A DNA stretch of 64,000 bases from Macrostomum lignano. Its lineage: Eukaryota. The translations under genes were made by a program, and so were the position numbers. This document shows, piece after piece, positions 27,730 through 37,422 of this stretch (position 1 is the stretch's first letter; the number at the start of each line of letters is the position of its first letter). Below the pieces are notes generated by a model. It was given only the letters and a program-made list of their open reading frames with translations. It made no database searches and was not told the origin of the DNA. Location of the stretch: positions 60,033-124,032 of the forward strand of contig NIVC01002615.1 in assembly GCA_002269645.1 (NCBI GenBank), given 5' to 3'.

Positions 27730-28371
27730 CTACTCGTCTTTCTGCTTGTTTGGGCCTTCGTTATCGCCGCTATTCAAAGCTTCATCAGCTTGTTCAGCTT
27801 CTCCAGCCTCGTCAGCTGCGGCAGCAGAGGTGCGGCTCGACTCTCCGCCAGCAGCAGCAGGCAGAAGCAGGCGGTTTTTGTACCAGCGGCGCAGCTGGCT
27901 GACCAGCAGCAGCGGCAGGTTGACAACTCGGGCCATGCGGTTCCTGGACACCAGCATGAACCACAGAGACTCCTCCAGCAGCCGGCGGCTCATCGCCGGA
28001 CTAGTAATCCAGACCAGAGCTAGGAAGAGTCCGCAAGCAGCCGAGGTTGCTATGGCAACAGAGATTAGCGCTAGACTGCCGGCCGCCAGGTCCAGAGCTT
28101 CACCTGTGAGCTCCTCGTAGGTGTTCAGCCCCTCCTGGCCGAGATGGCGGCGACAGGCGCGGGATCGGCAGACTCGCCTGCGGAGAACCTCATTATCCGG
28201 GGTGGCGTTGCGGCAGCTTTCCAGCGAGTCGAGCAGGCAGGTGCGGCTGCTGGTTTGGTGGCGCACCAGGCCGCAGGGCGGTTCGCAGTGGGACCAATCC
28301 GACCAGGCGGTGAACAGATAGATCGGATCACGCTGGCTGCACAGGCCATCCTTTTCCAGCACTCGGCCGGC
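27730..28371 (-). CDS. Terminal exon of the WSC/EGF/TSP1 membrane protein: EGF end, TSP type 1 repeat, TM helix, cytoplasmic tail
   Basis: AGRVLEKDGLC...WSDWSHCEPPCG...SRTC...C (TSP1), then the hydrophobic SLALISVAIATSAACGLFLALVWIT; phase-0 acceptor cttcttAG at 28372. Confidence 0.9.
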   Translation of the reverse strand, partial: AGRVLEKDGLCSQRDPIYLFTAWSDWSHCEPPCGLVRHQTSSRTCLLDSLESCRNATPDNEVLRRRVCRSRACRRHLGQEGLNTYEELTGEALDLAAGSLALISVAIATSAACGLFLALVWITSPAMSRRLLEESLWFMLVSRNRMARVVNLPLLLVSQLRRWYKNRLLLPAAAGGESSRTSAAAADEAGEAEQADEALNSGDNEGPNKQKDE

Positions 28372-28414
28372 CTAAGAAGCGATCAGACGTAGCAGATGTG
28401 CATTTTGCATTGCG

Positions 28415-28838
28415 TACTACTACTGCTGCTACTACTACTACTACTACTACTACTACTACTACTACTACTACTACTACTACTACTACTACTACTACTACTA
28501 CTTCTACTACTACTACTACTACTACTACTACTACTACTACTACTAATACTACTACTACTACTACTACTACTACTACTACTACTACTACTACTACTACTAC
28601 TACTACTACTACTACTACTACTACTACTACTACTACTACTACTACTACTACTACTACTACTACTACTACTACTACTACTACTACTACTACTACTACTACT
28701 ACTACTACTACTACTACTACTACTACTACTACTACTGCTACTACTACTACTACTACTACTACTACTACTACTACTACTGCTACTACTACTACTACTACTA
28801 CTACTACTACTACTACTACTACTACTACTACTGCTACC
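28415..28838. repeat. (TAC)n microsatellite (intronic)
   Basis: About 140 triplets; lies in intron 28859-28372. Confidence 0.99.
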
Positions 28839-28859
28839 ACTAATAAACACAGTTACAAC

Positions 28860-29162
28860 CTTGCACAAGCAGCGCCAGCCTCCATTGGGTGTGTCAGTAC
28901 AGATGCCCTCGCCGCAGAAGACGTTCTTACAAGCGCTCGATTCCTTTAGGCAGTTCTCAAACGGTAGCGAGGTGTCTGGCTGCGATTTACCTCGGCAGCC
29001 GCACGTGTAAGGGATGTGGGGCACAACAGGTGCATCCGAGCCGCTGAAAGCGTTGAAGCATACATTGCGCTCCGATTCGGGCTGTAGCGCTTGCACGAAA
29101 CAGGCCGAGTTTCCCATCTTTATGGTATCGCTTTTCCTCGTGCCCGCGTTTGATTCGCATCC
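28860..29162 (-). CDS. Cys-rich/EGF exon of the membrane protein
   Basis: GCESNAG...ACKNVFCGEGICTDTPNGGWRCLCK|, joining in phase 0 to AGRVLEKDGLC to complete an EGF module. The acceptor is preceded by a CTAAT branch-like motif. Confidence 0.8.
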
Positions 29163-29585
29163 CTTCCGAATTGGTTGCGATTAGAACGCTTTTAATAAGG
29201 CTCAGTCTCTTTCATACAGAAAGGGGGTGTCAAATTAGTTCCGAAAATTGAAGCGATGTATCAAAGTGGTGCTTTCATTGTCTGATACCTCTATTAGACC
29301 GGCATAATCTGGCAATGAGTATAAAATACTCTGACATAAGACAGAGAAATTTGGTATTCGATTAAATTACACTCATTGCCGGCTCAACAGAGGTATCCAA
29401 CAGCTCGTCCGACAAAGGCCGCTCATCGCTTCAATCTCGGAACTAAGTCGACAATCAACCCAAAAAGGCCGCTCATGTAGTGGAACTACGATCGCTAAAT
29501 TTCCATTCTTAAAACTAAGTTAAGGTCCCTAGTGTTTATCCTAGGTAGCTCATCAGTTCACTTAGTAAAAAAATGTCAACCTCAC

Positions 29586-34745: not shown

Positions 34746-35070
34746 GGGGCAGCACTACATCTACTCAACGATCTCAATGAAGAATCCCTGCAGAATGAAG
34801 TTAAAGATGTACTTTTAAAAAATTAAGGCTTGAAACCGGAGAGCAATGCGCAAGAGCTGGTGTAGACGCTAAAAACCGAACACACTCTTCATCCAGTATT
34901 CGTCTTTGACGACACCGGTTCATCCTTTTTGAGCCCGATGCCCTTATCGTCAGCAGGTGATAGTTTCATGGATGCGACTAGTGTTTTTCGACTTTCGACA
35001 AACAGACAACGCTCTTTATAGTATTTATTCGTACAAAGACACCACACGTTCAAACAAGGTCTACTTTTTA

Positions 35071-35409
35071 CCATAGACTATATATAGACAGAGTCCGAGA
35101 GAGAATGAGAGAGAGAGAGAGAGAGAGAGAGAGAGAGAGAGAGTGTGTGTGTGTGTGTGTGTGTGTGTGTGTGTGTGTGTGTGTGTGAAACATTGTGTTC
35201 AAGTGAGGAGTACATACCATATTTCCCATTTAATTCGGCTGTCTATGGGGTAGGGCTGCTGCAGCCACAGCTATTCATAATACGAGTACATGTTGAGTTA
35301 TGGTACTTTTAAATCTATTTTATTTACTCTATAAAGAGTATTATTCTTATCTTTTCTTTCAATTGCTACTGTAATGCTAGAGTGCAGCAAGAAGCCATAT
35401 AGTCTATGG
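35071..35409. mobile_element. Small MITE with CCATAGACTATAT TIRs and TTA flanks, carrying a (GA)n(GT)n microsatellite
   Basis: CCATAGACTATAT at 35071 and ATATAGTCTATGG ending at 35409, with TTA on both sides. Confidence 0.7.
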
Positions 35410-35475
35410 TTATAATACGCTGCGGCTGGATAATGCTAGAATGGCAGAAAATGCTACATCTAGGCAATATAGAAT

Positions 35476-36172
35476 CAAGGACGACTTAAGTAGAAGGACG
35501 GGAAACCTCGTTTCTTAGAAAAGTTTTGAAGGCACTTTTTCCCAAAAAAATACACTACGGAGATAGGAAGTTTTCATTTTTTCAGCACAAAAATTGTTAT
35601 TGCGTTTGATAGGAGGCAGATCCAGTGTTCATCTTTTGATATGTTGTGCCTTTTTTATTGCTCTATCTATATTTATAAAGCTTTTCGTTCAGAAAATTAG
35701 GATTCTATGTTAATTTTTTATTCTACGTATATTTCCTGTATCTAAAAATCACAAAAATGCATGACACAGCTCCAATATTTGGTTTTATGAATCTATTTTA
35801 TCATCTCTGTTACAAATATTTGCTACACAGTCGGATAAGAATGATAAAAAAGACTCATGAAGCTAAAGAGCCGAGCCGTGGCATTCTAATGTATTTCAAG
35901 CACAAGACACGCGAAAATATACGTAGAATAAAAAATTAACATAGAATCCTAATTTTCTGAACGAAAAGCTTTATAAATATCGATAGAGCAATAAAAAGGC
36001 ACAACATATCAAAAGATGAACACTAGATCTGCCTCCTATCAAACGCAATAACAATTTTTGTGCTGAAAAAATGAAAACTTCCTATCTCCGTAGTGTATTT
36101 TTTCGGGAAAAAGTGCCTTCAAAACTTTTCTAAGAAACGAGGTTTCCCGTCCTTCTACTTAAGTCGTCCTTG
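35476..36172. mobile_element. P-element-like MITE: ~259-bp TIRs, 180-bp spacer, 8-bp TSD TATAGAAT
   Basis: CAAGGACGACTTAAG... / ...CTTAAGTCGTCCTTG; TATAGAAT at 35468-35475 and 36173-36180. The arms differ at only about 3 positions by eye. Confidence 0.9.
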
Positions 36173-36515
36173 TATAGAATCTGTGATAAAATGTGCATTC
36201 AGTTGTTTGCTCTAACTGAAAAGATAATCGCGGCCATAGACTATAAGTTTTAATACTAAAGCTGTAATAAGCTTGAAAGCTCCCAGGGAAACCAGAATCA
36301 CTTGAACATAAGCCAACAGTAACTGTTTAACTCGAACTTTTTCGTGCATTAGCCCACAAGCTCTGGTCAAACTTGCATGGAGCTCTTGTGTTTTGCACAT
36401 CAATGCTGAGAATCCAAAGTTTTTTCACCTTACAATCGCAATAAGCATTATCAGCCATCGCCAATCATCATTAATCATAATTTCATGCCCTCGTATAATA
36501 TAAAACAGAACTCAC

Positions 36516-37422
36516 CAAAAGTTTTGAAGGTCCTGCCCTTCGAAGATTTACTGTAGAACCCGGCGCGCAAAATTGGCAGCTTAGTGTCGATGAAGATATT
36601 TAGCGAGTCAATGCTGATCCTCAACTTGTTGCGCAATCTCAAGGTCATGAAGAAGTCCTTTTCTTCGCTGCAACTCAGCGTATTAATATCCCAGTAGTAG
36701 CCAGGGCGGCAGTTGCAATTGAAGCTCCGGCGCCAGATCCGGGAATTCTGGGTGCAGATTGGGTTTTCCAGATTCTCGGTGACCTGCACGCAGGGATTGC
36801 AGTCGCGATTTCCGCTCGGACACTTGTCAGCGTTGTTGTACAGTCGCCCAGATTTGCATGGGTTCGGGCAGCGATTGTACAGGTCCTTGTCAATTGCATC
36901 GATGCGAGACATTGCGTCGCAATAGGCAAAATGGTACATCTGGGTCAAGAGGTCCTGACGCTCTGACCTATCGGCCTTGATGCCGCTTGAGGCCAGCACC
37001 CTTTCAAACTCCATGAACGTTTCCAGAAACCGGGTAGTGAAATGAAAAAGCAAAAAGTTTAGTCTTTTTTCATTGACGGTTTTGGCTACAGGTAGGTACG
37101 CCATTCGCTTGTCTTGAATCACCAAATCCGGCACTATTCTCGTAGCGTTCATATAATTTTCCTCAAACAGAAATCCGTCCATGAATCGGCGCACCCAGGG
37201 CAGCCAGCGCATCCTGTCGGAAAGTTTCTCGGTGCTGTTTCTATAGACGCCATCAAAAATACCGACTGGCAGTTCGGCCGTGCCAACTAAACCGTATTCG
37301 AAGCCGCTGTGCAGCCGTTTGGTAATTTCCGAGTTCTTTGGATACTGGATAAAGTAGTGGTGCACTAGGCAGTTAGCCACTGCTGCGGCTCCCAGCAGGG
37401 CTAAAATTCGAGCGAGCAGCAT
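36516..37422 (-). CDS. First exon of the WSC/EGF/TSP1 membrane protein: signal peptide and EGF-like module
   Basis: MLLARILALLGAAAVANC signal peptide; CPNPC...CNPC...C...FNCNCRPGYYWDINTLSC; canonical phase-1 donor TTTG|GTGAGT at 36515. Confidence 0.88.

Follow-up and report, generated by a model that had tools for sequence, protein, structure and literature searches.

Analysis of a 64,000-nucleotide (nt) stretch of contig NIVC01002615.1 of the flatworm Macrostomum lignano (the window, to whose numbering positions refer) indicates, with a probability that we put at about 0.6, that its minus strand carries one real gene (cluster Mlig014286, copy g2) whose ancestral and still existing product is a type I membrane glycoprotein of about 1,690 amino acids (aa). 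This product would comprise, in order, a signal peptide, a helical N-terminal domain, an EGF-like region, six modules of the WSC/PAN superfamily, an unassigned domain, EGF domains, one thrombospondin type 1 (TSP1) repeat, a transmembrane (TM) helix and a short acidic tail. The databases hold the gene only as fragments, and its open reading frame (ORF) is broken in this assembly copy by a run of seven T (T7) in place of eight (T8), likely a homopolymer error.

Between 37422 and 27730, six long open segments of the minus strand are joined by canonical GT...AG sites, with matching phases at every junction. They total 5078 nt, and one T added to the T7 run (30264-30270) gives 5079 nt and an ORF of 1692 aa whose sole stop is terminal, exactly reproducing the six in-phase exons proposed by an earlier reading made from the sequence without database searches (the sequence-only reading). 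The frame changes in exon 4 near 30270, where frame 1 hits a stop (30203-30205) and frame 0, opening just upstream, carries the module on (FFSQRLNDLRCAC). This break lies inside module 6, whose Cx3C motif is in one frame and whose CxC motif, three further cysteines (Cys) and CGN motif are in the other. That a single module is split in this way over two frames indicates that both once formed one ORF.

The fragments in the public records corroborate most of this structure. Within 20203-42223 of the window, which belongs to the Mlig_3_7 assembly, the only protein annotated for this gene is PAA56492.1 (Mlig014286g2, 636 aa), modelled from an internal ATG of exon 3 at 32223 to the frame-1 stop at 30203. 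PAA59475.1 (BOX15_Mlig014286g1, 1171 aa) is 97% identical to the spliced protein, has identical junctions of exons 1-4, and is encoded at locus L001 on contig NIVC01002258.1, which is collinear with the window over ~25 kb, intronic tandem repeats included. Two UniRef records from another M. lignano annotation belong to the same 90% cluster, namely A0A1I8ID58 (556 aa), named 'WSC domain-containing protein' by its source, and A0A1I8HCA5 (1213 aa). The latter translates the frameshift site unbroken (KKFYTIFFSQRLNDLRCAC; ...CIKKCRKQLKKFYTIFFSQRLNDLRCAC...), crosses the exon 4/5 junction (HLTGCESNAG) and goes on to the end of exon 5. Its read-through encodes TIFFSQ, which needs T8, and an in-frame version of the gene therefore exists. 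Because the gene models of the Mlig_3_7 assembly derive from a genome-guided transcriptome (PMC5730564), exons 1-4 also have transcript-based support. The exon 5/6 join finds no support among annotated proteins and is based on splice phase and on the third EGF domain (C1456...C1478/...C1490), whose completion across the junction supports it; exon 6 is 99.7% identical between the window and L001. Mlig_3_7 was assembled from PacBio data with Canu and polished by Pilon using both DNA and RNA reads; it carries 180 Mb of duplicated blocks at at least 95% identity (PMC5730564). T7 instead of T8 is probably an uncorrected long-read homopolymer error in such a duplicated region.

The ectodomain contains six Cx3C...CxC modules, at aa 397, 524, 690, 838, 970 and 1136, whose Cys columns are invariant in their alignment. 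The modules are mutually only 13-18% identical, and retention of the Cys core at this level of identity argues for long-term constraint on the family. WSC domains are defined by eight Cys in four disulfides, two of which are common to PAN/Apple domains, while the other two (C1-C6 and C7-C8) and a CGG motif are WSC-specific; in the shared core, Cx3C on helix alpha1 is bonded to CxC on strand beta4, and the PAN-like fold (beta1-beta5-beta3-beta4-beta2(alpha1)) is wrapped by loop L5 (PMC9024836). By this definition module 2 is a canonical eight-Cys WSC domain (C499; C524x3C528; C543xC545; C561x3C565x7C573GG), its last part spaced as C86x3C90x7C98GG of the yeast protein ScWsc1, and module 6 is nearly canonical, with eight Cys (C1119; C1179x6C1186x8C1195GN). 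The WSC-specific Cys are partial in modules 1, 3 and 5, of which 3 and 5 are without the C7-C8/CGG part, and module 4 has only the shared core plus the extra Cys of its Cx3Cx3C motif. Modules 2, 3 and 4 have Pfam WSC (PF01822) as their only or best-scoring family, with expectation (E) values of 0.03, 0.002 and 0.007, and a profile of the six modules finds the WSC domain of yeast Wsc1 (7pz2) as its top match among the 177,635 sequences of the PDB (E 0.042). Assignment of all six to the WSC/PAN superfamily is thus supported, unevenly, at the sequence level, with one canonical WSC, one near-canonical and four degenerate modules. The count of about six WSC-type modules in the sequence-only reading stands for the cores, fully for module 2 and nearly so for module 6, and less well for the four degenerate modules; none of the six is at the Pfam cut-off.

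The remaining topology agrees with that first proposed. Hydropathy gives a signal-peptide-like N-terminal segment (aa 1-17) and just one TM helix (aa ~1574-1602), which is followed by an acidic tail of ~90 aa. EGF-like Cys patterns lie at aa 185-251, 1343-1373 and 1456-1490. The third fits a six-Cys arrangement (C-x4-C-x4-C-x9-C-x-C-x11-C) and scores 20.4 bits against Pfam EGF (PF00008; cut-off 21.5, E 6e-4); the other EGF-like regions score lower, aa 185-251 giving weak EGF_3/cEGF matches only. The predicted TSP1 repeat with its WSDWS motif (aa 1502-1506) was likewise recovered, with the six-Cys pattern of PF00090 (W1502SDW1505S, C1508x3C1512G, C1524, C1532, C1547x4C1552). The three best Pfam families of this exon 6 repeat are all TSP1 families (TSP_1, 13 bits, cut-off 21.6; TSP1_CFP_C, 18.5 against 27; TSP1_spondin, 15.2 against 41), none of them at its gathering threshold. 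The F5/8C-like strand motif suggested for aa 253-367 was not borne out, this segment matching no Pfam family at E<=10, the F5_F8_type_C profile included. Neither the N-terminal helical region nor aa ~1240-1345 has a Pfam match.

Several results weigh against this reading. No Pfam family reaches its curated cut-off in the whole protein or in any segment; for PF01822 the gathering threshold is 27.8 bits, and the best scores, in modules 2-4, are 15-19.3 bits (E 0.0008-0.03), modules 1, 5 and 6 having no Pfam WSC match. The AlphaFold2 (AF2) model of module 2, built from an alignment of the six modules, shows the strand-helix-hairpin order at low confidence only (predicted local distance difference test, pLDDT, 42; core 55-62). 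Foldseek returned four matches for this low-confidence model, consistent with a WSC/PAN fold but none with a significant E-value: 7pz2 accounted for the first two (E 0.78, template-modelling score 0.37), and an Eimeria PAN module (1hky) was third. AF2 of PAA59475.1 alone is unusable (pLDDT 30), and the helices that the sequence-only reading saw in the N-terminal region are predicted there at low confidence. Exon 6, with the TSP1 repeat and the TM helix, is covered by no annotated protein, and literature full texts and the supplements of M. lignano papers yielded no mention of Mlig014286, no expression pattern and no function. Others bear on the frame itself. L001 has the same T7 plus a second 1-bp deletion in exon 4 (CCC to CC, at window position 30086), and as assembled requires two corrections for read-through. 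Exons 1-3 of the two copies differ by 12.5 synonymous and 34.5 non-synonymous changes (dN/dS 0.76), the differences over all six exons are spread 14 / 20 / 16 by codon position, and exon 1-3 divergence (2.0%) is matched by that of intron 1 (1.9%).

These last observations are what would be seen if the frameshift were real in the window copy and in g1, which would then encode just a secreted protein cut short at 1171 aa, with TSP1 and TM missing, or represent a young pseudogene whose downstream exons are still open through too little decay time. We regard this as a possible but doubtful explanation. It is favoured by the T7 in both Mlig_3_7 copies, with the further deletion downstream in L001, by both NCBI models ending at the frame-1 stop despite Pilon polishing with DNA and RNA reads, and by a dN/dS of ~0.8 with even codon-position spread and equal exon and intron divergence. 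However, the window and L001 share 99.3-100% identity over exons 4-6 and their introns, so the shared T7 is not independent evidence, and both indels that separate the records sit in homopolymers (T7; C3 in the window and C2 in L001), as is typical of long-read error. A0A1I8HCA5, a third record, has the in-frame version. Near-neutral divergence is expected of a decaying gene and equally of very young duplicates or haplotypes, between which dN/dS is inflated; the window copy might nonetheless be under relaxed constraint or in decay. The variation spares the Cys: among three copies, none of 75 variable residues falls on any of the 78 Cys (P=0.015), which, together with the Cys core retained in the modules, points away from neutral decay. 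An uncorrected homopolymer error therefore remains the preferred account, and the splitting and shortening of the gene in public annotation (636 aa and 1171 aa as against 1692 aa) would be due to a homopolymer indel in a duplicated region. Such truncated models matter to users of the Mlig_3_7 gene models.

Identity between the two copies is not uniform along the gene. Exons 1-3, intron 1 and the upstream region (37978-34400) differ by 2-3%, and introns 2-5 with exons 4-6 (33340-28415) by 0-0.7%, a step that suggests recent gene conversion or a recombinant haplotype over the 3' two-thirds of the gene. A hypervariable patch in exon 2 (33668-33715, aa 504-519), corresponding to the loop that links the first Cys to the helix in module 2, the canonical WSC, differs between the window and g1 at 14 of 45 nt and 11 of 15 residues, as against ~1-2% elsewhere. 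It occurs in two forms, each in two records (the window and A0A1I8ID58; PAA59475.1 and A0A1I8HCA5), and could be a gene-conversion tract or diversifying variation.

A further question is whether most of the modules are better called PAN/Apple-type than WSC, in which case glycan binding could not be inferred from WSC. This seems to us rather unlikely, although only the Cx3C...CxC disulfide pair, common to PAN/Apple and WSC (PMC9024836), is invariant among the six. Module 4 has nothing beyond that core but one extra Cys, modules 3 and 5 are without C7-C8/CGG, and the only Pfam-like match of module 1 is PAN_2 (E 1.5); the PAN module 1hky is also among the four Foldseek matches. Against this, modules 2-4 match Pfam WSC and not PAN, the module profile matches a WSC domain in the PDB, and modules 2 and 6 bear the WSC-specific Cys and CGG/CGN.

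That the locus holds two genes, with exons 1-4a coding for a secreted N-terminal protein and a second gene downstream for EGF-TSP1-TM, is very improbable. NCBI annotation does stop at 30203, with nothing annotated downstream, but the frame break falls within module 6, which resumes in the other frame, and the downstream part, although it codes for extracellular domains and, after them, a TM helix, has neither its own signal peptide nor its own start. A0A1I8HCA5 is one ORF across the break into exon 5, which also speaks against two genes. Least probable of all is that T7 is genuine and the full-length protein arises when ribosomes slip by -1 on U UUU UUA, or through polymerase (transcriptional) slippage, one mRNA giving both a secreted 1171-aa WSC-array protein ending at 30203 and the membrane-anchored 1692-aa form; if true, a rare kind of cellular recoding would switch a surface receptor between its soluble and its anchored form. 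Read in the upstream frame, AT[T TTT TTA] forms a perfect in-register X XXY YYZ heptamer, from which a -1 shift enters the downstream frame, but any loss from T8 to T7 before A yields this heptamer automatically, the 98 nt downstream of it show no better folding than shuffled sequences (z 0.11), -1 frameshifting is seldom found in cells, and the T8 in-frame copy exists (A0A1I8HCA5). A 20-nt GT...AG intron (GTTATACACAATTTTTTTAG) would also mend the frame; it was ruled out, as the segment is translated in A0A1I8HCA5 (…LKKFYTIFFSQ…) and even the shortest intron of the gene, at 110 nt, is far longer.

The search for relatives used the spliced protein against 5.8 billion proteins (word-indexed search) and the 1171-aa PAA59475.1 against 1.84 billion representatives (HMMER scan), the C-terminal 520 aa being covered by the word-indexed search only. 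Neither found a relative outside M. lignano: the matches were the species' own copies and, in the HMMER scan, one spurious bacterial protein of 2084 aa (E 9e-13), rejected as a homologue since it is a Cys-free tandem-repeat protein whose score sums 22 repeats of one weak match. The whole protein gave nothing meaningful against the PDB by phmmer. The search for paralogues that the sequence-only reading had recommended gave none within the window (tblastn), and outside it the near-identical second copy L001. An origin from a contaminant such as diatom food or a parasite was rejected in view of the collinearity with a second M. lignano contig, the common tandem repeats and the same EF-hand neighbour. 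As far as is visible in these searches, the protein thus appears to be a sequence-level orphan restricted to M. lignano, in agreement with the unfamiliar architecture first noted.

The architecture matches none of the named families tested, and is a lineage-restricted new arrangement of known extracellular module types. Module 2 (aa 499-575) has the pattern of the WSC domains of Wsc1 (7PZ2) and Kremen1 (5FWS), C...Cx3C-x14-CxC-x15-Cx3C-x7-CGG, and all six modules keep the helix Cx3C and the strand CxC. They differ from WSC domains in that every score is below cut-off, in that four fall short of some or all WSC-specific disulfides and CGG, in that five carry an extra Cys outside the ScWsc1 pattern (Cx3Cx3C in four, Cx3Cx5C in module 1), and in their long linkers (130-165 aa per unit as against ~90 aa per WSC domain). 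Like Kremen1/2, the kringle-WSC-CUB-TM Dickkopf co-receptors, the product would be an animal type I membrane protein with WSC in its ectodomain and a short tail; unlike them it has six modules rather than one, added EGF and TSP1 domains and no sequence relationship, and kringle and CUB gave no Pfam match at E<=10 in the whole protein or its segments. The LRR, PKD, REJ, GPS and PLAT domains of polycystin-1 were likewise not found by Pfam, and a single TM helix stands against its 11, so that neither of the WSC-bearing families named in the sequence-only reading accounts for the architecture. The fungal Wsc1-3 sensors and the beta-glucan lectin WSC3 of Serendipita indica share the single-pass membrane stalk with WSC or the tandem glycan-binding WSC array (PMC9024836), but in fungal multi-WSC proteins the WSC domains are canonical, the stalk is rich in Ser/Thr and both EGF and TSP1 are absent, and homology is undetectable beyond the domain type. 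In the same species, the prostate-gland-specific transcript RNA815_80.4 (969 nt) encodes two canonical WSC domains that match fungal proteins at ~1e-11, with rapid evolution noted for such reproductive genes (Arbore et al. 2015, PMC4490696); it is not detectable as a paralogue of this gene.

Apicomplexan micronemal adhesins and invertebrate apical-matrix proteins are built from PAN/Apple, EGF and thrombospondin repeat modules. The same toolkit (a PAN-superfamily array, EGF, thrombospondin repeat, one TM helix and a short acidic tail) is seen here, in different domain order and numbers, with no ZP or vWA domain and no sequence relationship. By analogy, this common toolkit suggests a ligand-binding surface adhesin.

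Table 1. Exons and frameshift site of the Mlig014286 gene in the window, with the content of each exon.
Feature	Position	Strand	Length	Splice sites and notes	Content
Exon 1	36516..37422	-	907 nt	ATG at 37422, donor GTGAGT at 36515; structure identical in paralogue PAA59475.1/L001	Signal peptide aa 1-17, helical N-terminal region aa ~20-185, Cys-rich EGF-like aa 185-251, start of ~110-aa region
Exon 2	33633..34317	-	685 nt	Acceptor CAG, donor GTAAGT; junction residues same as PAA59475.1	Rest of ~110-aa region, module 1 (aa 368-464), first half of module 2 (C499, C524x3C528), hypervariable patch 33668-33715
Exon 3	31521..32236	-	716 nt	Canonical splice sites; Pfam WSC E 0.0014-0.03	Second half of module 2 (C543xC545, C561x3C565x7C573GG), module 3 (C690x3C694...C709xC711)
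Exon 4	29586..31410	-	1825 nt	Canonical splice sites; frame broken within module 6	Modules 4, 5 and 6, ~120-aa region (aa ~1240-1345), EGF-like half-domain (C1343...C1373)
T7 homopolymer (frameshift site)	30264..30270	-		One base fewer than the in-frame T8 implied by A0A1I8HCA5	
Exon 5	28860..29162	-	303 nt	Acceptor AAG/GGA, donor AAG/GTTGTA, phase 0	Cys-rich region, first five Cys of third EGF
Exon 6	27730..28371	-	642 nt incl. stop	Acceptor CTTCTTAG, phase 0; 213-codon open frame	Last Cys of third EGF (C1490), TSP1 repeat aa ~1500-1552, TM helix aa ~1574-1602, acidic cytoplasmic tail

Tandem repeats are abundant in and around the gene. Intron 5 (488 nt here, 623 nt in L001) is filled by a (TAC)n microsatellite of ~143 units (28415-28842), which on either strand gives rise to long artefactual ORFs of poly-V, poly-S, poly-L and poly-T. 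Arrays of a 21-nt unit (x16.6, 34407-34755) in intron 1 and of a 19-nt unit (x40, 32577-33330) in intron 2 are also found in L001 at other copy numbers, and both generate long spurious ORFs. Immediately downstream of the stop codon, G-rich arrays with periods of 21, 18, 26 and 38 nt occupy 24122-27491, and the first ~200 nt past the stop contain no canonical AATAAA. Upstream, an intronless gene for an EF-hand (calmodulin-like) protein of 155-156 aa lies in divergent orientation (40668-41135, plus strand) ~3.2 kb from the start codon. Both copies have it annotated, and the two genes are separated by a tandem array (46 nt x18, 39330-40169). On the other side, a 256-aa ORF (19332-20102, minus strand) contains one C2H2 zinc finger that passes the Pfam threshold (33 bits) and probably represents an exon belonging to a neighbouring gene. 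Finally, positions 1-10000, with a GC skew of -0.4 to -0.65 and long ORFs (3723-5327, 8379-9605) without Pfam match, are probably low-complexity repeat sequence.

The sequence-only reading had proposed a glycan-binding adhesion or recognition receptor, a role that we, too, can only infer from the domain types and that need not involve glycans, since known WSC ligands include glycans, for the fungal WSC lectins, and WSC also mediates protein-protein contacts, as between Kremen and Dkk (PMC9024836). By analogy with such domains, the ectodomain, long and rich in disulfides, would be expected to bind a glycan or protein ligand outside the cell, either on the cell surface or within the apical matrix; the role of the protein would then be in adhesion or recognition, with its tail coupling to the cell interior.

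Mosaic extracellular orphans are common in invertebrate genomes, and the gene touches no long-standing open question. If the full-length product is real, M. lignano would possess a surface protein without a detectable relative among billions of sequences, and its array would record WSC/PAN modules eroding to a two-disulfide core while the array itself was kept, a useful case of domain decay. The protein would also be a candidate in flatworm-specific adhesion, in the matrix, or in gamete or partner recognition.

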